Shown here one piece after another: positions 6,355-49,401 of a stretch of 64,000 nt of DNA. Position 1 is the stretch's first letter. The number at the start of each line of letters is the position of its first letter. Location: positions 124,001 through 188,000 of IMG/VR virus record IMGVR_UViG_3300008448_000001. One strand, 5' to 3'. A program made the translations under genes and the position numbers. The notes under the pieces were generated by a model that was not told the origin of the DNA, did not search any database, and saw only the letters and a program-made list of their open reading frames with translations.

Positions 6355-6906
6355 ATGGCTGACGTATACGCAAGGCAGAGAACAGGGTTCGGAGGCTCTT
6401 TTGCTTCCGACTTGGCAGCGATGACAATCGCAGGAAGCACGACTCCGTTAGGTATCGTGCAGAACGTGCAGATTAACTTTTCGCAGCAAGTGGCACGCAT
6501 TTATGATGTTTCCAACGGCGGATCGGCCAACGCAGGCACGGGAGGTTTTGTGCCCGTGTTCTACGTTGGAGGCCGAACGCAAGGCAACGCCAGCATTGCT
6601 CGAGTGTTGGGCCCGCAGTCCGGCGCTTTGTGCGCTTTCTATGCTGAGATCGGAAACGTCTGCTCGCCGCAGGATCTGACGTTCACGTTTGCCGGGGGTT
6701 GCGGTCCTTCCGGGCAGGGTTCAAGTCCTACCCAGCCGATCGCTTTTAACACAGCAGTCGGTAACGCGGAGGCGAATTCCGTCAAGTACACGATTCAGGC
6801 CGCGACCATGGTTAACGTAACGGTCGGTGTCGCGGCGCAAGACATGATCGTGAATGAAAACATCGCGCTGATGTTTGCCAACTTGAGCTGCGACGAAATC
6901 GTGTAA
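6355..6906 (+). CDS. Tail tube protein
   Basis: 183 aa beta-rich gene immediately after sheath, GAGGT RBS, followed by a terminator. Confidence 0.7.
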   Translation: MADVYARQRTGFGGSFASDLAAMTIAGSTTPLGIVQNVQINFSQQVARIYDVSNGGSANAGTGGFVPVFYVGGRTQGNASIARVLGPQSGALCAFYAEIGNVCSPQDLTFTFAGGCGPSGQGSSPTQPIAFNTAVGNAEANSVKYTIQAATMVNVTVGVAAQDMIVNENIALMFANLSCDEIV

Positions 6907-6928
6907 GCGGAAACTACGATGGCAATTT

Positions 6929-6966
6929 AAGGCTAGCTCAGGTAAAAATGAGCTAGCCTTTTTTAT
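6929..6966 (+). terminator. Rho-independent terminator
   Basis: 12 bp perfect stem AAGGCTAGCTCA/TGAGCTAGCCTT, 8 nt loop, T run. Confidence 0.85.
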
Positions 6967-7053
6967 TGAGCGACGCTGCGGCGGCCAAATTGCGTTAAAA
7001 TGCGGTTTTAAGTCCGGCCAGCCCCAAACGCACCGCAAGGTGAGATACCGTAA

Positions 7054-9861
7054 ATGTCACTACCTTGGAACTCCGCGCAGAACGTTAACAGCCAACCCGC
7101 CGTATTGAATGCCAAGCAGACAGGGGCGGCTCCCAGCGATTACGCCTTTCTTTACAGCCTCTTCTCTCGAGTTCAAGAGGCTACTTCTGTCGTACAGCAG
7201 TCGATCACAGGTACGGTAGCGGAAGACCCAAAAAAGCTTGCGGTGGTGCAGAACCATACGTTCCAGCAAGACACTCCGCTTCGAATGGGTAAAGTTCTTT
7301 TCGCCATACCTTACTTGCATTGTTATGTTGTGCAGTTGGCGGGTAGGCAAGGCAAATGCATGGCCGTAGCCAGTGGGCACAATGCCATGACGCCCTTAGG
7401 TGTTCGAAGCGGAGAAGTCATTCCGCCGAATTCAAACGTCATTCTGTGGAAACCGAAGAGCTCATTCCTGGCTTATATTATGGGTACAGTGCCCTCGCCG
7501 CTGTGGTCTGACTTTTACAGCCCGGCTGAGATCCTGCAGCAAGGCGGCAACACGGGTATCAAGCAGATTCCGGCTTACGTTAATCTGATCAATTCGTCGA
7601 CGGACGGTTTGGGTGTCAGGGCCCACACAGCCGGAAGGCCTCTAGACGGAACCGTTGGCGAATACGTTCGAATGTCGGAGACAGGTATTGGCTTGCTAAT
7701 TGACTCGTTCCAGGCTTACTTGCGAGTGAACGAAGCGACCGGGCTTTTCCTCAACTATTTCGACGACTACGCCAAGCTTTCCGGCGTTTCGCTCGATGTT
7801 CAATCTTATGCAACGCACGTTTCTCAGCGACTAGACGAGGGTGAAATTTACTCTCGCATCGGGCACGCCATCTACCCTTGGGAAGCTACCGGCATGTACG
7901 GGCCGGATGCCAACTTCACAAGTAGTAATGACCCGGCTAAAGTTCAGCTCGACCGTGATTTTCCGCTCGCCGAGATAGACGTGAACAATCCAGGTCAAAC
8001 CCCGATTCATCGTTTGACCGAGTACGGCGGATACCTGGGACAAGGCTATCAGCGGATGTTGATGCGTCCGTCAAAGACCAGCGGCATTCGAGTTGCGACC
8101 GATGCAGCGTCGAATGTGGATACGGGTCTTTTCCACGAGATGTTGAGCTTGGACGGAAGTTACGGCGTCCGCACTGCTAAGAGTTACTCAATCGTCAAGT
8201 ATCCTGCAATTCCTGTCCCGCAGGAGCTTCGAAAGCCGGAGGACGCGAAAGGCGACGACCTTGCCGAGAATAACAACTACCGTTTCAGTGGAGTATACGG
8301 TAGCGGCGACGAGCACAAGGTTCGAGACTGGGACGATTCGTCTGTAACCGACGTGCCGTCAATTCTCAGGGCTGCGGGCGTGATGGACATGCTATCGCAC
8401 CAGTTCAACTGGAAAGGTACGCATGCCTTTGCTTACCATGCGAAAGATTACCATTACCCGCAGGAAAAGAACGGGGGTAGTGTTCTGGCCGCGGGTGTCG
8501 AGTTTTATCGCGGCAGCATGTCTCAAGCGTACGTGCAGGTAGAACCGAAAAAGCTGGAGATCGACAAGCGATACGGCGACTCAAACTACTACAACACCAT
8601 GTCTTTTTTCCGGCTCGAAGAAGACGGAAGCGTGATCATCGCAGACGGTTTTGGTTCGCAGCTAACCATGACCGGCGGGCAGATCCGGCTGGAGGCAGGT
8701 GGCGACGTAATGATACTGTCCGGGTCCCGTGCAATCACCATGGCCGATGATGTGATTTTGCGTGCCCGATCTAACGTAGACGTGTCCGCAAGTGACAAAG
8801 ACGTCCGCATCAAGGCGGAAAACAACATACAGGTACTGGCCGGGAATGGCGGTTATGGTGGTATCTTGCTAGAAACGAAGGGGCAGGGAACGTCTCAGAA
8901 TTACCAACAAAAGATTGGCGAAGAGGTGCAATCCGCAGGCATCACGTTGTTAGCCAAAGGCTCTGCGGTTAACGCTATTTCGCAAGACAATTACATCCGC
9001 ACCGGTGTCACGAAAGAGGTCGCCGAAGGCTACGGTACGTTTATTGTGGACTGCGGCAGTGGTCGCGGCGATTGTATCAACTACGCCAGACAGCACGTTT
9101 TTGTGAACAGCATAGGACTGGGTATCTACCATAGCGCACCGGGCCAAGGCGAAGCGACCATCAACAAGTCGCACTTCTTCGGCCCGTCTTTTTCAAAGAT
9201 AAACGGCCCAACGGTATTTACTAAGAACGTTGTCATCACCGAGAACGGCGCACTTGGCGTCGAGGGGAGCGTTTACTCGAAGGGCCAGATCTTCGCTCTG
9301 CGAGCCATGGCCTGTTACAAAGGGCGAGTTGGCGACAGCTCGCAGGGAGAGACTCCGACAGCAATTCGGGACTTTATCGACGCGTACGAAGAAGCAGTTC
9401 CTAAATTCAATACCGCCGGACAGACGGCAATACAGTATCTGCAAGAAAGAGTGTGGGCCGAGAACCGTGTAGGTAATAACACGTTCCTGTTGGACGAGGT
9501 CGGATTTTCGTACCGTGACAACAGTCAAAGCGGAAACGCTTACGGGTACGCAGAAGGCAAGTTTTTCTTGCTGGAAACGCGTTGGCAGCAGCTTGATCGG
9601 ATGGGGCTGACGCAGGTCTCGTCTTCGACTTGGCAAGAGAACCCCGTGTTCTACCAAGGAAATAGCCTGTATCCTTGGCCCGGAAAGAAAAACTGGGCTG
9701 GTGACGAGACGTTTTTAGCTTACAGTAACACCGACGATTTTGTGGTTTTTGACAAGGGTGCGAAAGCCGCTAAGGACCGTGACGCGAGTCAAACGGATTA
9801 CGAGTCGCCTGTGTTTAAACCTTGGAAGCAACGTGTCTGCGATGGCAATTACAAACTATAG
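7054..9861 (+). CDS. Baseplate spike / gp5-VgrG-like protein
   Basis: OB-like N-terminal region; beta-helix-like stretch (RLEEDGSVII...IRLEAGGDVMILSG...VRIKAENNIQV). Confidence 0.55.
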   Translation: MSLPWNSAQNVNSQPAVLNAKQTGAAPSDYAFLYSLFSRVQEATSVVQQSITGTVAEDPKKLAVVQNHTFQQDTPLRMGKVLFAIPYLHCYVVQLAGRQGKCMAVASGHNAMTPLGVRSGEVIPPNSNVILWKPKSSFLAYIMGTVPSPLWSDFYSPAEILQQGGNTGIKQIPAYVNLINSSTDGLGVRAHTAGRPLDGTVGEYVRMSETGIGLLIDSFQAYLRVNEATGLFLNYFDDYAKLSGVSLDVQSYATHVSQRLDEGEIYSRIGHAIYPWEATGMYGPDANFTSSNDPAKVQLDRDFPLAEIDVNNPGQTPIHRLTEYGGYLGQGYQRMLMRPSKTSGIRVATDAASNVDTGLFHEMLSLDGSYGVRTAKSYSIVKYPAIPVPQELRKPEDAKGDDLAENNNYRFSGVYGSGDEHKVRDWDDSSVTDVPSILRAAGVMDMLSHQFNWKGTHAFAYHAKDYHYPQEKNGGSVLAAGVEFYRGSMSQAYVQVEPKKLEIDKRYGDSNYYNTMSFFRLEEDGSVIIADGFGSQLTMTGGQIRLEAGGDVMILSGSRAITMADDVILRARSNVDVSASDKDVRIKAENNIQVLAGNGGYGGILLETKGQGTSQNYQQKIGEEVQSAGITLLAKGSAVNAISQDNYIRTGVTKEVAEGYGTFIVDCGSGRGDCINYARQHVFVNSIGLGIYHSAPGQGEATINKSHFFGPSFSKINGPTVFTKNVVITENGALGVEGSVYSKGQIFALRAMACYKGRVGDSSQGETPTAIRDFIDAYEEAVPKFNTAGQTAIQYLQERVWAENRVGNNTFLLDEVGFSYRDNSQSGNAYGYAEGKFFLLETRWQQLDRMGLTQVSSSTWQENPVFYQGNSLYPWPGKKNWAGDETFLAYSNTDDFVVFDKGAKAAKDRDASQTDYESPVFKPWKQRVCDGNYKL

Positions 9862-44012: not shown

Positions 44013-44857
44013 ACACATGAAACCTGAAGAACTAGCAACGATTTTAACTGAGCACGCGAAGTGGTTAAAGGATGAAGGTGGCAAAAGGGCCAACCTGCAC
44101 AGGGCCGAACTTCGCGGGGCCAACCTTGGTGGGGCCGAACTTGCCATGGTCAAACTTGCCGGGGCCGACCTTCGCGATGCCAACCTTCGCGGGGCCAACC
44201 TTGGTGGGGCCGAACTTGCCATGGTCAAACTTGCCGGGGCCGACCTTCGCGATGCCAACCTTGCCGGGGCCAACCTTCGCGGGGCCAACCTTCGCAGGGC
44301 CTTCCTTTTAGGAGCCAGCCTTATCGGGGCCGACCTGGAAGGGGCCAACCTTTACAAGGCCAACCTTATCGGAGCCAACCTTGCCGGGGCCAACCTTCGC
44401 GGGGCCAACCTTTACAAGGCCAACCTTATCGGAGCCAACCTTGACGGGGCCGACCTTCGCGGGGTCAACCTTCGCGGGGCCAACCTTCGCCGGGCCAATC
44501 TTGAAGGGGCCGACCTTCGCGGGGCCAACCTTAACGGCGCTGACCTTGACGATGCTAATCTTACTGGGGCAAGAATCGACACCCTGGTTTGTCGCATGGA
44601 TATCGATCGTTGGTCGATCTGCGTTTACGCGGACCGAACATCCATCGGTTGCAAAACACAACCTAATGAAAACTGGTTGGCTTGGACATCGGAAAGCGAA
44701 GAGATCAAGAAGATGCACTCCGATGCGGCTTCTTGGTGGGCAACGCACGGCGAGTTTATCAAAGCAGCAATCCGCCACGTGATAAAAAATTCGAAAGGCA
44801 ATAACACATGAAACCTGAAGAACTAGCAACGATTTTAACTGAGCACGCGAAGTGGTT
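44013..44857 (+). repeat. 54 bp exact direct repeat at 44013-44066 and 44804-44857
   Basis: ACACATGAAACCTGAAGAACTAGCAACGATTTTAACTGAGCACGCGAAGTGGTT twice. Confidence 0.92.
44017..44811 (+). CDS. Pentapeptide repeat protein
   Basis: Long A(N/D)LxG repeat tract plus C-terminal domain (SIGCK...WL...WW). Confidence 0.92.
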   Translation: MKPEELATILTEHAKWLKDEGGKRANLHRAELRGANLGGAELAMVKLAGADLRDANLRGANLGGAELAMVKLAGADLRDANLAGANLRGANLRRAFLLGASLIGADLEGANLYKANLIGANLAGANLRGANLYKANLIGANLDGADLRGVNLRGANLRRANLEGADLRGANLNGADLDDANLTGARIDTLVCRMDIDRWSICVYADRTSIGCKTQPNENWLAWTSESEEIKKMHSDAASWWATHGEFIKAAIRHVIKNSKGNNT

Positions 44858-45467
44858 GCGTGGCGAGGGCGGAAAGAAAGCCAACTTTTACAGTGCCAAC
44901 CTGGTTAGTGCCAACCTTTGCGGTGTTTATATGCGACATTGCGACTTTCGCCTGGCTGAGCTTGTACGGGCCAACCTGGTCTATGCCAACCTTGGCGAGG
45001 CCAACCTGCGAGGTGCCAACCTGTTAGACGCTAAACTGTTCGAGGCTAACCTGGAAGGTGCCGACTTGCGGCATGCCAACCTAAGCGAGGCCAACCTTCG
45101 AGGTGCCGACCTGCGGCATGCCAACCTGGAAGGCGCCAATCTGTACCGTGCAAACCTGGAAGGCGCCAATCTGTACCGTGCAAACCTGAAAGGTGCAAAC
45201 CTGAGCCGCACCGTCGTGATCGGCGCTTGCATCAACGCCGCAATTTGTAGGATGGATTTTGGAGGTTGGTCGGTCTGCGTTTACGCGGACCGAACAGCTA
45301 TCGGCTGCCAGCAGCGCATTAACGAGGACTGGTTAGCGTGGACGCCTGAAAGCGAAGAGATCAAGCAGATGCACGAAGATGCGTCTGCTTGGTGGAAGTC
45401 GCACGGCGAAATGATTAAAGGCGTGATACGGGGTGTGATGGCAAAAGCGAAAGGCGGTGACACGTGA
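44808..45467 (+). CDS. Pentapeptide repeat protein (tandem paralog)
   Basis: Same architecture; identical first 16 codons. Confidence 0.92.
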   Translation: MKPEELATILTEHAKWLRGEGGKKANFYSANLVSANLCGVYMRHCDFRLAELVRANLVYANLGEANLRGANLLDAKLFEANLEGADLRHANLSEANLRGADLRHANLEGANLYRANLEGANLYRANLKGANLSRTVVIGACINAAICRMDFGGWSVCVYADRTAIGCQQRINEDWLAWTPESEEIKQMHEDASAWWKSHGEMIKGVIRGVMAKAKGGDT

Positions 45468-45979: not shown

Positions 45980-46225
45980 ATGGCAGAAATTGACGCGATC
46001 GCACTCGACGCAGTAATGAACAGTTTAAAACGCGCAGGTCTTTCCTGGCCGCACGGCGACCGAGAAATGCTTAAAGGTTTGATCCGAATTTACTTCGGGG
46101 ATATTTCAACTCGGCTCATTGCCGAGCTGGAAAAAATCGACAAGCAATGCGCAGCGGCACAACGTGCTGTTGACAGCCTCCAGGTTGCTTGGAAAAAAGA
46201 TAAGAATCGAAAGCGAGCCTTTTGA
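45980..46225 (+). CDS. Hypothetical protein
   Basis: AAGGT RBS; 81 aa helical. Confidence 0.55.
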   Translation: MAEIDAIALDAVMNSLKRAGLSWPHGDREMLKGLIRIYFGDISTRLIAELEKIDKQCAAAQRAVDSLQVAWKKDKNRKRAF

Positions 46226-46234
46226 TTTAGTGTG

Positions 46235-46308
46235 GTGACCGTAGCTCAATAGGTTAGAGCAGGAGACTCATAATCTCTCGGTTCCCGGTTCAAGTCCGGG
46301 CGGTCACA
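46235..46308 (+). tRNA. tRNA with CAT anticodon, probably tRNA-Ile2 (otherwise elongator Met)
   Basis: Acceptor GTGACCG/CGGTCAC, D arm GCTC/GAGC, anticodon loop CTCATAA, T arm CCCGG-TTCAAGT-CCGGG, discriminator A, CCA not encoded. Confidence 0.92.
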
Positions 46309-46371
46309 CTGCTGACAACTGCTACGTAGCAGCTGTTACCTTGTTTGTTAGACCCTTTCACAGGAGTTGAT

Positions 46372-46623
46372 ATGATAGGTTTAATGAAGAAGAAGAACCG
46401 CAAGGAGTGGTTCGATAAAATTGCGAGAGAGTCGCGACGTCTCGGAAGCTACATGGTGAGCTACAATCCGCAGAAAAAAAACGGAGCCTCGGAAGAGGAA
46501 ATCGTTTGGGAGTTGAAGAAACGAGGAGTGCAGTCAGTGCAGTTTTACTCCGCCTTTTTCGACGTGTTTACCCCGTTTAAACCCGCGGAAAACGAGCAAC
46601 CGCTGACGGAAGCGTGTTCCTAA
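46372..46623 (+). CDS. Hypothetical protein
   Basis: AGGAG RBS before ATG 46372. Confidence 0.55.
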   Translation: MIGLMKKKNRKEWFDKIARESRRLGSYMVSYNPQKKNGASEEEIVWELKKRGVQSVQFYSAFFDVFTPFKPAENEQPLTEACS

Positions 46624-46645
46624 CGCAAGACTTCAGGGAGGAAGT

Positions 46646-46807
46646 ATGCTCCGATTGATTTTGATTTTTACGTTTCTGGCGGGCGGTTGCGCCGCCCCCA
46701 GACAACAAACATTAAGGGTGGACGTCTACGCACGTAATGTAGATGTCCTTGCTGATAAGTTTTCAGGGAACGGCGATGTTGCGGTTTCCTATTCATCCGT
46801 TTGGTAA
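46646..46807 (+). CDS. 53 aa putative lipoprotein (absent from ORF track)
   Basis: GGAGG RBS; MLRLILIFTFLAGG-C signal; TAA at 46805-46807. Confidence 0.6.
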   Translation: MLRLILIFTFLAGGCAAPRQQTLRVDVYARNVDVLADKFSGNGDVAVSYSSVW

Positions 46808-46820
46808 GAAAGACAGAATC

Positions 46821-47054
46821 ATGATCTCCACAGTTGAAAAGTCCCGTGACACCTTCGTGGCGGCGAGAAGCGTAATCGTCGTGCGACGAAAAACCTTGAA
46901 GGCGTTCCAGGCCGAACCGCAAGATCCGTGGAAGGTCGGTTTAGAAAGTACGACAGACCAACTGTCGCCAGAAGAGCTGGTTTCCTGGTTTCGCCAGGGT
47001 TACTCGCCCGCTGATATCAACAAGACGAAACCTTCACGTCTTACCTTCGAGTAA
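46821..47054 (+). CDS. Hypothetical protein
   Basis: ATG just after the lipoprotein stop. Confidence 0.5.
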   Translation: MISTVEKSRDTFVAARSVIVVRRKTLKAFQAEPQDPWKVGLESTTDQLSPEELVSWFRQGYSPADINKTKPSRLTFE

Positions 47055-47088
47055 CAAAAGAACCTGAGAAAGGATTTTGATTTTGCCT

Positions 47089-47466
47089 ATGTCAGATACA
47101 AAGCTATCGAAGTTATCGATTACCCGTCGCGTTTGCATGGGGTCGAAACCCCCAGATGAAAGCTGCTTTTTGTTGGGTGAGACGGAGTTTCAGGTGCGAG
47201 CTTCGTCGCAAAATACCGCGCAAATTTGTGTCGTACCTCCGGGCGGTAAGCCGAGTTACCTGCGGTTTCTCGCTAAAGACAAGCCGTTGAAGCACGGGCA
47301 GTGCTTGATCGAACTTGTCGAAGGAGGATCGAATATCAGGCTCCGGTTCACCGCGACTCAGTCGGTGGCGATCGACCGCAAGGAAGTTCGGCGAGCAAAG
47401 TTGGCGTCAGCTAACCGTCAACGGGCTACCGCGAAAACCGTAGACACGGTTGTCGCAAGCAAGTAA
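47089..47466 (+). CDS. CsrA/RsmA-like protein, extended
   Basis: LSITRR...ESCFLLG and GSNIRLRFTATQSVAIDRKEV resemble the N- and C-terminal CsrA motifs (LILTRR.GE; VRIGI.AP..V.VHREE). Confidence 0.5.
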   Translation: MSDTKLSKLSITRRVCMGSKPPDESCFLLGETEFQVRASSQNTAQICVVPPGGKPSYLRFLAKDKPLKHGQCLIELVEGGSNIRLRFTATQSVAIDRKEVRRAKLASANRQRATAKTVDTVVASK

Positions 47467-47508
47467 AATCCCCGAAAGTTCAACCCTTTACTCGAGAGGT
47501 ATACACAG

Positions 47509-47835
47509 ATGATTGAAGTAGTGCAGTGCCAACTAGCTAGTGACGGCACGCGGGCCATCGTTTCGGTGCGGTCCGACAAAAAGTCGTTTACCGAGCAGAT
47601 CGAAGAGCTTGGATCGGCTGCGGCCCGTAACGAGGCCCTAAGAGCCGCGAGTTCCGCTGGCATTAAGGGGTCTCCCGGCATTTCGGGAGCCGCCCAGGCG
47701 ATTCACCCGCGAAACAAAGAAGGCAAGTCGTTAGACGACCTTCGCGATAGCGAAGGGAAACCGCTTGACTTTTCGAGCCCGGAAATGCAACCAGCCTATT
47801 ACCAGGCTGCCTTTGAGATCACCGCCAAGGTGTAA
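47509..47835 (+). CDS. Hypothetical protein
   Basis: GAGGT RBS; 108 aa. Confidence 0.65.
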   Translation: MIEVVQCQLASDGTRAIVSVRSDKKSFTEQIEELGSAAARNEALRAASSAGIKGSPGISGAAQAIHPRNKEGKSLDDLRDSEGKPLDFSSPEMQPAYYQAAFEITAKV

Positions 47836-47855
47836 TCGCAGGTAATGCCAATTTC

Positions 47856-48125
47856 GACAGCAATCAGCTAGCCATTTCGGTGGCTAGCTAACGCAAGGCG
47901 GCAACAGCCTAAGTTGCACTAACAAATAAGCCGACCGGGTACGCGAACAAGTTCCGACAGACGGTCAGGTCTAGGTCTCAAAGAATAGCCCTGACGCCCG
48001 TTAGGCCACCACAGGCAAGCGATTCGGATAGCAAAACATGAGGAGAACAGTCATGAAGCGATGATGATTACAAGACGAGCCGAACTCGGAGGCAAAACCG
48101 ATAAGGCGGCAACAGCCTGAGTTGC
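47856..48125 (+). ncRNA. Candidate structured RNA with a duplicated 23 nt hairpin motif
   Basis: AGCTAGCCA/TGGCTAGCT stem; AAGGCGGCAACAGCCTRAGTTGC at 47895 and 48103. Confidence 0.4.
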
Positions 48126-48127
48126 GA

Positions 48128-48252
48128 GGATCGGCGGCGTGGACAACGACACGCGGAAAGCTGTGCAACGCCTAAACGCATAGACGCAACGGATTCGGAA
48201 CAGATCGAATACCGCCAAGTATGAAAAGCAGGTGTAATTCCTGCCCGATCCT
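48128..48252 (+). ncRNA. tRNA-like element A
   Basis: GGATCGG/CCGATCC acceptor-like stem, GCGTG/CACGC D-like arm, GCAGG-TGTAATT-CCTGC T-like arm. Confidence 0.65.
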
Positions 48253-48253
48253 T

Positions 48254-48411
48254 TGCATATGCGAAACCTGCTACTGGTAGCCTACGGGCATGCAGAGTCC
48301 AGTGAAATGGTTAATTTTGTGCCGCAAGGATCTGCTTCCGGAGATAATTCGAAAGGAGCAGGGAGCGGGTAATCGGGTCGTGCCGAGCAAAGACACAGCC
48401 GGAGAGACGGC
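48254..48411 (+). ncRNA. Structured RNA, possibly manA-motif-like
   Basis: GCGAAACCTGC, GTGCCGC, GCGGGTAATCGGGT...CCGAG blocks and hairpins; resemblance to manA is from memory only. Confidence 0.35.
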
Positions 48412-48413
48412 GA

Positions 48414-48508
48414 GGATCGGCGGCGTGGACAGTGACACGCTCACCAACACTCCTGCAAGTATCCAATTGAGTGCAGGCGACAGCAGGTGCTAATTCCTGC
48501 CCGATCCT
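48414..48508 (+). ncRNA. tRNA-like element B
   Basis: Same acceptor/D/T scaffold as element A with a different interior. Confidence 0.65.
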
Positions 48509-48588
48509 TTTCGGAGCGGTACGAAAGAAAGATAGTAAAAGGTGCGAAATGACACCAGATAAGCAACCGCTTGTGAGGCTGGTAAATT

Positions 48589-48672
48589 GGATCGGCGGCG
48601 CGGGACCACTGAAAAGTAATCCGCGATGGTGCTCAAAGAGCGGTCTAACATGTTCGAATCATGGCCGGTCCG
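48589..48672 (+). ncRNA. tRNA-like element C
   Basis: GGATCGG/CCGGTCC stem; canonical T loop CATG-TTCGAAT-CATG. Confidence 0.55.
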
Positions 48673-48675
48673 CTG

Positions 48676-48722
48676 AGTTATTAAGGCGTTCTTAATAACT
48701 GGATGTTTGTTGGTTTGTTTTG
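48676..48722 (+). terminator. Possible terminator closing the ncRNA island
   Basis: AGTTATTAAG/CTTAATAACT 10 bp stem followed by a T-rich tract. Confidence 0.45.
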
Positions 48723-48735
48723 AAAGGGTTTGGTT

Positions 48736-49401
48736 ATGCGTTTTGTTTGTTTTTTGGTTTTAGCATTGGCGAGTTCGCTGGTCTCGGCGCAGACACCGCT
48801 ACCGGTTCGATTTGTTGAGGCCGGTCAAACTGTGACGGTTCCCAAGGGCAATTACCTGCAGACGCAAGAAGTCATCGTCCGCAAGGGAGGTGCTCTCATT
48901 CTTGAGGCCGGTGTAACTATCCAGGTGAAAGGCCTTGGATTGCCCATGCAGGTCTATGGTTCGCTTTCAGTTAACGGTACCGAGGCTGAACCTGTGGTGG
49001 TCGGCCCCGATGCCGCCGGTGTTTGTGGCACACTGGCAGCGTACCCATCTGCTGACGGCACTAGGCCGCAAGTAACAATTGATTACCTCGAATGGGCCAC
49101 TACCCAAAACTCAAACTGCCTGTTTTTCTCAAGGTGCGACTTCGCTGTCGCCAATAGCGTATTTTTGAGCAATGGTGCTAGCAGCACCAACAGGGTTTGC
49201 GTCCAAGCAACAAACGACTCCGCCGGGAGCGTCAACGATTGCTTATTGGAATGCGTTAAGGCGACCGGAGTGACGACGAACGGGATCGTTGTGAACGGAA
49301 GCGGTGCAGCGGTTGACCTGTGGAACATAACCACAGTTAATTGCGACAATCCGCTAAGGATCAACAAGTTTGTTGCTAAGGTTACAGGAAGCGTTCGCTA
49401 G
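48736..49401 (+). CDS. Secreted beta-helix-like protein
   Basis: Signal peptide MRFVCFLVLALASSLVSA; LILEAGVTI...VYGSLSVNGTEAEPV motif. Confidence 0.7.
   Translation: MRFVCFLVLALASSLVSAQTPLPVRFVEAGQTVTVPKGNYLQTQEVIVRKGGALILEAGVTIQVKGLGLPMQVYGSLSVNGTEAEPVVVGPDAAGVCGTLAAYPSADGTRPQVTIDYLEWATTQNSNCLFFSRCDFAVANSVFLSNGASSTNRVCVQATNDSAGSVNDCLLECVKATGVTTNGIVVNGSGAAVDLWNITTVNCDNPLRINKFVAKVTGSVR

Follow-up and report, generated by a model that had tools for sequence, protein, structure and literature searches.

A candidate single-chain variant of the CsrA fold with one predicted RNA-binding face in freshwater jumbo phages

CsrA is an obligate interlocked homodimer, and its two RNA-binding faces underlie both the bridging of two sites in an RNA and its own sequestration by multi-site small RNAs (sRNAs). 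The family includes a rearranged form (RsmN/RsmF) and forms with an extended C-terminus (FliW-binding); RsmF is reportedly still a homodimer, its short chains having an internal helix. CsrA is subject to control by FliW and by CesT. Here we analyze a CsrA-like protein, P0001, encoded in a 64,000-nucleotide (nt) stretch of phage DNA that corresponds to positions 124001-188000 of the record IMGVR_UViG_3300008448_000001 (hereafter the window), together with its relatives in other genomes. Our data suggest that two CsrA-like units, one of them truncated, are joined in this protein into a single chain with one predicted RNA-binding face.

The canonical RNA-binding face of CsrA is formed by β1 of one subunit and β5 of the other, and L4 and R44 are critical to it (PMC7652899). 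CsrA homologues encoded by phages, prophages and plasmids are known, including the RsmM-type proteins of Pseudomonas aeruginosa phages, PTXU04_00028 and RsmQ; they are highly similar to bacterial CsrA and of canonical size, with only the C-terminus varying (PMC7366521, PMC8450108, PMC11879866, PMC9928087), and knock-down of one phage-encoded homologue shrinks plaques (PMC8450108, PMC7366521, PMC11879866). A single-chain mimic of the CsrA dimer was described by Andreeva and Murzin in the C-terminal domain of the YqeH GTPase (3EC1), where two repeats within one chain adopt the β-sandwich architecture of the CsrA dimer; the relation of these compact repeats to CsrA is one of segment swapping, and no similarity in sequence is reported (PMC2954204).

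The gene under study lies in the second half of the window:

47089..47466, + strand: CsrA-like open reading frame (ORF), 125 amino acids (P0001); ATG at 47089, stop codon TAA at 47464-47466

This ORF is a real, conserved gene. Copies of its product are found on other IMG/VR and metagenome contigs, one of them 100% identical and two relatives at 94% and 92% identity, and more distant relatives share 35%, 31% and 34% identity within a length class of 112-127 residues. Its codons differ from those of the 94% relative (locus L002) by 12 synonymous and 7 non-synonymous changes. An exhaustive phmmer search of 1.84 billion cluster representatives recovered four true relatives only (31-94% identical), a further row, P0005, being discarded as a low-complexity false match, and word-index searches with P0001 and with the family profile returned the same four and added none. 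A tblastn search with P0001 gave zero matches in 50,697 phage records, and no second CsrA-like gene was found in the phage's own genome, the record of which is complete at 204,794 base pairs (bp) with direct terminal repeats and hence represents a jumbo phage. The family, whose members are basic (isoelectric point 9.3-10.0; about 10 for P0001), was found only in a few related jumbo myoviruses from freshwater.

The original prediction, a note made from the letters of the window, had matched the N- and C-terminal stretches of the protein to the two ends of a CsrA monomer, and profile searches, structural databases and the tandem alignment presented below all bear this out. P0001 carries LSITRRV (residues 9-15), ESCFLLGETEFQV (residues 24-36) and IRLRFTATQSVAIDRKEV (residues 83-100), and its residues 80-102 align with positions 27-49 of the Pfam CsrA profile (PF02599) at 12.9 bits (E-value 0.11). 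The same profile is matched by five of five family members; the relatives score 18.4, 21.2 and 30.7 bits, the last of these being P0006, which passes the curated Pfam cut-off of 27 bits through the sum of two partial matches, 20.3 bits in its C-half and 13.1 bits in its N-half. PHROG 9500, 'CsrA-like regulator', matches P0001 with an E-value of 0.005, and the family profile finds the PDB CsrA/RsmE chains 5dmb_D, 2jpp_A, 1t3o_A, 1y00_A and 1vpz_A, pairing residues 64-111 with CsrA 11-59. When the family was compared by hhalign with a CsrA profile built from 61 distinct IMG/VR CsrA sequences and E. coli CsrA, residues 81-103 fell on CsrA 28-50 (P 1e-4). IMG/VR holds 364 canonical CsrA stretches, as counted with the E. 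coli protein as query.

That the protein is of double length, with roughly one additional monomer between the two ends, was also part of the original prediction, and the intervening stretch proved to be CsrA-like itself. The chain divides into two units:

47104..47244, + strand: unit 1, residues 6-52; β1 6-14, β2 26-29, β3 32-39, β4 43-49 (strands of the AlphaFold2 model)
47248..47460, + strand: unit 2, residues 54-124; β1′ 57-62, β2′ 67-69, β3′ 72-78, β4′ 82-90, β5′ 95-97, helix 98-124

The weaker, N-terminal CsrA-like segment falls in one register in three independent comparisons. The N-half of P0006 matches positions 12-38 of Pfam CsrA (E-value 0.095), the N-half of the family aligns by hhalign with the CsrA profile over residues 27-52, equivalent to CsrA 12-38 (P 0.006), and an internal repeat is detected between the two halves of the family (residues 30-52 with 70-91, P 0.002). 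A tandem profile consisting of CsrA(1-38) followed by CsrA(1-58), built from fetched alignments for hhalign, aligned globally with residues 8-111 from end to end (93 columns, 23% identity) and scored best at 23.9, versus 14.5 for a single CsrA and 13.4 for the reversed order. In this alignment KLSITRRV pairs with MLILTRRV at the N-terminus of CsrA, FLLGE-TEFQVRASSQNTAQICVVPPG lies within the paired stretch ahead of the second ILTRRV, and the remainder corresponds to CsrA 9-58.

Unit 1 carries an 8-residue insert in its β1-β2 loop and lacks β5 and the helix, and a short PPGGKP loop connects it to unit 2, which is the equivalent of a complete CsrA chain with a whole-chain match over residues 54-108. 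The proposal of a single-chain pseudo-dimer is supported in modified form: two CsrA-like units do reside in one chain, but they comprise a β1-β4 unit and a complete β1-β5-helix unit, which together provide nine strands, not ten, and one of the two RNA faces.

AlphaFold2 (AF2), run on a 7-sequence alignment, yielded a model with nine strands and a helix (predicted local distance difference test score, pLDDT, 82.9; predicted template-modelling score 0.71), in the strand order expected of a β1-β4 unit followed by a β1-β5-helix unit; the alignment-based model was used in place of one made from the single sequence, which reached a pLDDT of 41. Structure prediction against CsrA had been proposed as a check of the original prediction. 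Using VIA-align, P. aeruginosa RsmA (1vpz_A) superposes on model residues 54-108 with a Z-score of 4.5 and a root mean square deviation (r.m.s.d.) of 1.6 Å over 55 aligned residues of a chain of 57, and these residues follow the β1-β2-β3-β4-β5-α topology of CsrA. FliW-bound CsrA (5dmb_D) aligns with model residues 57-125 (Z 4.7, 68 aligned), and RsmF (4krw) aligns across both units (residues 5-101, 51 aligned, r.m.s.d. 2.1 Å, 24% identity).

Matches to the model as a whole, which tell us more, came from databases of predicted structures. In the ESM Atlas, a cluster of 98 residues (Pfam CsrA in 91% of members, half of them viral) and one of 88 residues ('carbon storage regulator family') both cover residues 3-100, with template-modelling (TM) scores by target of 0.77 and 0.82, respectively, and the Atlas's own ESMFold model of P0001 gives the same neighbours. 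BFVD returned nine viral proteins at an E-value of at most 0.001, seven of them 88-114 residues long and one named 'Carbon storage regulator'. Judging from these predicted models, the single-chain fold recurs among phage proteins, some of which are annotated as CsrA. A homodimer prediction with two copies of P0001 scored 0.00 in a run without controls and counts neither way.

The two halves of the canonical RNA-binding face can be located in the chain:

47113..47133, + strand: β1 of unit 1, LSITRRV; aligns with CsrA L2-V8, I11 being the L4 equivalent
47365..47388, + strand: β5′ and helix start of unit 2, VAIDRKEV; aligns with CsrA V40-I47, R97 being the R44 equivalent

Residues V93, I95, D96, R97, K98 and V100 (VxIDRKxV) are invariant in all 7 sequences, and in β1 the family keeps L9 without exception and has isoleucine, phenylalanine or leucine at position 11 and arginine or lysine at position 14. 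Since unit 1 gives β1 and unit 2 gives β5′, and unit 1 has neither β5 nor helix, exactly one canonical face is possible. Two identical RNA faces, the hallmark of CsrA, are not found, as one predicted face has the I11 and R97 equivalents and the other lacks β5 and the helix; nor does the AF2 model show the obligate interlocked homodimer of two short chains with two five-stranded sheets, since it has one chain, which itself supplies the partner strands of unit 2, and one of its sheets is four-stranded.

We infer the protein's state as a monomer, its binding to RNA, its specificity for GGA and its targets as follows. A single chain in the CsrA fold would replace the usual interlocked homodimer, and one predicted canonical face, made of L9, I11, R13 and R14 from the N-terminal β1 and of V93, I95, R97 and V100 from β5′, would bind single-stranded motifs, either GGA-type or resembling Shine-Dalgarno sequences, in messenger RNAs (mRNAs) of host or phage during infection. 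Binding would repress or otherwise modulate translation of the target mRNAs, and the protein would act as a monovalent CsrA mimic, unable to bridge two sites in one RNA. An engineered CsrA heterodimer with one R44A face is impaired in full glgC repression (Mercante et al. 2009, reviewed in PMC7652899). Because a CsrA dimer with one dead face fails to repress glgC fully (PMC7652899), a natural single-face form would probably have a different, narrower or competitive action.

Several results weigh against this interpretation. P0001 alone scores far under the Pfam CsrA cut-off (12.9 versus 27 bits), the signals of its N-terminal unit are individually weak (P 0.002-0.1), and β1 of the distant members reads LSFAVKV or LALTFKA, with the R6 equivalent lost and only the R7 equivalent basic. 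The alignment given to AF2 is thin, since of its 7 sequences 3 are mutually close and 2 are almost the same, and unit 1 is assigned to the position of the partner subunit from the compactness of the model, its strand order and the whole-model matches, not from a dimer superposition. The best single-chain PDB Z-scores belong to the CcsBA/ResB periplasmic domain (7.8-9.8) and to domain I of class II fusion proteins (about 7), although Z-scores of 6-10, as obtained for these generic β-sandwich matches, are in a range that the aligner itself terms common. A Foldseek search of the AF2 model against PDB chains found nothing significant, as is to be expected because solved CsrA entries are half-size, non-compact chains. 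As for provenance, the stretch is present, at least in part, in 20 sequencing runs from 13 studies; all are DNA metagenomes, mostly of freshwater or lake water, with zero RNA runs among them. The tail sheath, used for host assignment, shares only 27-33% identity with that of the closest cultured phages, which infect Vibrio, Salmonella and Rhodococcus.

The computational data nonetheless show a real, conserved ORF, a two-unit CsrA-like architecture, conserved face residues and similar single-chain folds in other phages. With confidence somewhat above even, we interpret P0001 as a phage protein of the CsrA fold, a truncated single-chain pseudo-dimer with one predicted RNA face that would act as a monovalent CsrA mimic. 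We put forward tentatively, as a possibility, the broader proposal that it is a natural, conserved, monovalent single-chain CsrA, derived by duplication-fusion of the interlocked dimer into a one-face monomer, and one example of a wider phage class of about 80-130 residues that occupies GGA/Shine-Dalgarno sites without bridging them and that the multi-site sponge RNAs of the host perhaps do not titrate efficiently. If true, P0001 would be a clean case in which evolution turned an interlocked dimer into a monomer through duplication-fusion, avidity effects could be dissected with a monovalent CsrA that is ready-made, and phages would be using structurally disguised CsrA mimics that are missed by sequence searches. 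Single-chain CsrA-like proteins may constitute a hidden class of phage proteins.

A first alternative retains the CsrA-like fold but has it act via protein contacts or assembly, either as a dimer that restores two faces through the open β2′ edge or the long helix, or in partnership with, or under the control of, the product of the adjacent gene, much as CsrA answers to FliW or CesT:

47509..47835, + strand: conserved neighbour, 108 amino acids; starts 42 nt past the CsrA-like gene

One sheet of the AF2 model does lack an edge strand, and FliW-bound CsrA (5dmb_D) has an extended C-terminus onto which helix 98-124 aligns. The 108-residue gene follows the CsrA-like gene, directly or with one small gene between them, in L001-L003 and L007-L009, which are all the relatives read there, and its product is more conserved than the CsrA-like protein: the identities in L007, L008 and L009 are 70-73% for the former and, by MAFFT alignment, 31-35% for the latter (40, 37 and 34% over the stretches matched by HMMER). 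Nevertheless, none of the possible interfaces is positively supported, the 108-residue protein matches no Pfam or PHROG family and has no clear fold relative in an ESM Atlas search, and a neighbourhood alone is a weak argument. We regard action via protein contacts as unlikely.

The neighbourhood itself is that of a tailed phage. Nearly all long ORFs of the window are on the + strand, and genes for the tail sheath, the baseplate wedge and tail fibres lie upstream of the CsrA-like gene, the tail fibre genes being a few kb away. Gene order is largely kept in the relatives and runs from a tRNA-Met gene through small ORFs to the CsrA-like gene and the 108-residue gene; in L007 the kept order extends further, via the island described below or Gly-Tyr-rich ORFs, to a gene of 136-139 residues. 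In the window the tRNA-Met (CAU) gene is at 46235-46309 (+), and it has the same relative position in L002, L005, L006, L007 and L008. A 53-residue ORF at 46646-46807 (+) with a lipoprotein-like signal (LAGGC) has a homologue in L007, and ORFs of 53 residues stand at the corresponding place in L001-L003, L008 and L009. Further upstream, two adjoining genes at 44017-44811 and 44808-45467 (+) encode pentapeptide-repeat proteins that both match PHROG 7713, the first of them also matching Pfam PF00805 (E-value 1e-60). In a promoter and terminator scan of 46200-48800, sites were no more frequent than in shuffled sequence. A putative conserved leader motif upstream of the ORF, AAGGA (47070-47074), was rejected, as the gene overlaps the upstream ORF in L007-L009 (by 11 nt in L008).

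Downstream of the 108-residue gene lies a region from which the original prediction had drawn cognate RNAs for the CsrA-like protein:

47836..48720, + strand: non-coding island with repeats and no long conserved ORF; not counted in the protein's system
48128-48251, 48414-48507 and 48589-48671, + strand: three tRNA-like modules, recognized from repeats and folds
L006 7030-8801, L007 7902-8471 and L002 6033-6870: tRNA-like modules in relatives

Twelve such units are present in four genomes, three in the window, five in L006 and two each in L002 and L007. They are 70-139 nt long. Besides a 7-bp acceptor-like closing helix (GGAUCGG/CCG(A/G)UCC), they contain one hairpin resembling a D-arm and one resembling a T-arm, with a variable stretch between the two; the T-arm-like hairpin reads GCAGG-7 nt-CCUGC in most units. 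Their minimum free energy (MFE) folds are cloverleaf-like, and a T-run follows 9 of the 12. In the 83-nt type the T-loop reads UUCGAAU (UUCGAAG in L002), and a canonical anticodon loop is absent. Neither ARAGORN nor Rfam calls any of the modules.

A 23-nt direct repeat, AAGGCGGCAACAGCCT(A/G)AGTTGC, occurs at 47895-47917 and 48103-48125 of the window and could form a small hairpin. One of its copies ends two bases ahead of the first tRNA-like unit, and its 3′ part, CCT(A/G)AGTT, recurs ahead of units in L002, L006 and L007. The 12-mer GGATCGGCGGCG has two more exact copies outside the window, at 70909-70920 (+) and 122589-122600 (-) of the phage genome (G000), which may be additional tRNA-like units or chance matches. 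Gly-Tyr-rich repeat ORFs (GYGYG..., from GGCTAC repeats), found in L002 at about 6500-6751 and in L007 at 6916-7469, fill part of the gap between the 108-residue gene and the tRNA-like units in the relatives, and none is present in the window. Directly 3′ of a tRNA-like unit, L007 also encodes an RNA ligase at 8506-9099 (+) (Pfam PF09414, E-value 5e-13); PF09414 has no match in the window's own genome.

A second alternative, and the reading of the original prediction, is that the protein is a full pseudo-dimer with the adjacent island RNAs as its ligands, making up a self-contained phage Csr circuit of a protein and its titrating sRNAs. Gene and island share a strand, the gene lying 370-1250 nt upstream, and gene and tRNA-like units both recur in L002, L005, L006 and L007. 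However, gene order is largely kept throughout the region, so the adjacency of the two is uninformative, and gene-neighbourhood conservation, which had been proposed as a check, provides no argument for a protein-RNA pair. The GGA words cited for these RNAs are indeed present, but in numbers that are at chance: the 885-nt island contains 19 GGA, versus 15.0 +/- 4.1 in segments of equal length across the window, 22% of which reach that count (21/kb in the island versus 17/kb in the window), and 4 A.GGA versus 3.4 expected. CsrB/RsmZ-type sponges are several-fold denser in GGA than the island.

Folding points in the same direction. Fully unpaired GGA number 0 of 9 in the MFE folds of the three repeat units and 3 of 19 in that of the whole island, and the one GGA that recurs in each unit opens the closing helix GGAUCGG as its first three bases; the nearby titrating sRNA with many loop-displayed GGA that is expected of a Csr/Rsm circuit was not found in the island. 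Rfam, searched at gathering thresholds and at E-values of up to 10, returned only chance rows resembling small nucleolar RNAs for the island and no CsrB/RsmY/RsmZ-type match. Moreover, the relatives conserve the protein but differ in unit number and in what the island contains, and a one-face protein cannot gain avidity from multi-site sponges. A loose end that keeps the circuit from being dismissed outright is the junction between leader and closing helix, which reads ARGGAUC in 8 of the 12 units (A-R before the unit) and which we take to be a partial match to the core of the type selected by CsrA in vitro (SELEX, systematic evolution of ligands by exponential enrichment). P0001 gives no evidence for a phage-borne Csr protein-sRNA circuit, and we consider the circuit very unlikely.

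Equally improbable is a third alternative, in which P0001 would be a small β-sandwich unrelated to CsrA (such as an accessory of the virion or baseplate, or a domain like ResB) whose CsrA motifs arose by chance or as a remnant and which does not bind RNA: the CcsBA/ResB and class II fusion domains do head the PDB ranking (Z 6-10), the phage baseplate proteins 9mjn_df, 7yfz_h, 9ndy_O and 7kh1_A4 align over residues 4-94 (Z 4.2-4.6) and the gene is a few kb 3′ of tail fibre genes, but the generic matches have common Z-scores, the sequence links are specific to CsrA and in the correct register in both halves, the invariant motif falls on the RNA-binding residues of CsrA β5, and proteins annotated as CsrA are among the best matches to the whole model in the Atlas and BFVD.

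Read as a single-chain, one-face form of CsrA, P0001 can be compared with each of the known systems. It shares with canonical CsrA/RsmA/RsmE (PF02599; 1Y00, 1VPZ, 2JPP) its basic charge, the strand order of unit 2, the β4-AP-x-x-V-x-(V/I)-x-R motif of that unit, with the R44 equivalent, and an N-terminal β1 reading LSITRRV versus LILTRRV. It differs in being one chain of 125 residues instead of two interlocked chains of about 61, in having one face instead of two symmetric ones, and in its 8-residue β1-β2 insert and 27-residue helix. Like the CsrA homologues of mobile elements, it is a mobile copy of the CsrA fold that presumably reprograms post-transcriptional control; unlike them, it carries an additional unit at the N-terminus, and sequence searches barely detect it. 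RsmN/RsmF (4KRW) illustrates that strands of the CsrA fold can be re-wired, whereas the re-wiring in P0001 would be a duplication-fusion.

YqeH's C-terminal domain is a precedent for a monomeric equivalent of the interlocked dimer, but unit 2 of P0001 keeps the chain conformation and the sequence motifs of CsrA, and 3ec1 is not among the top structural matches of the AF2 model. The R44A heterodimer resembles P0001, as predicted, in presenting a CsrA body with a single working RNA surface; it is a laboratory construct, whereas the single-face state of P0001 would be natural and conserved.

Closest in predicted layout are phage proteins of 81-114 residues in BFVD (A0A6G5YEX0, A0A1J0MD66, A0A6J5RUQ1 'Carbon storage regulator', A0A7S5US24 and others) and the Atlas clusters of 88, 95 and 98 residues. 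Their matches span both units with TM scores of 0.6-0.84 by target, and they are mostly from Uroviricota. Judging from predicted folds, they probably share the single-chain architecture, but no sequence similarity to the P0001 family was detected by exhaustive phmmer or by the profile word search. Our literature search on single-chain, tandem, duplicated or monomeric CsrA found no description of such a protein, nor did we find a published account of these look-alikes. Because the homodimer and the two symmetric faces are lacking and the Pfam threshold is passed only by a relative, we class P0001 not as a plain member of the CsrA kind but as a structural variant of it.

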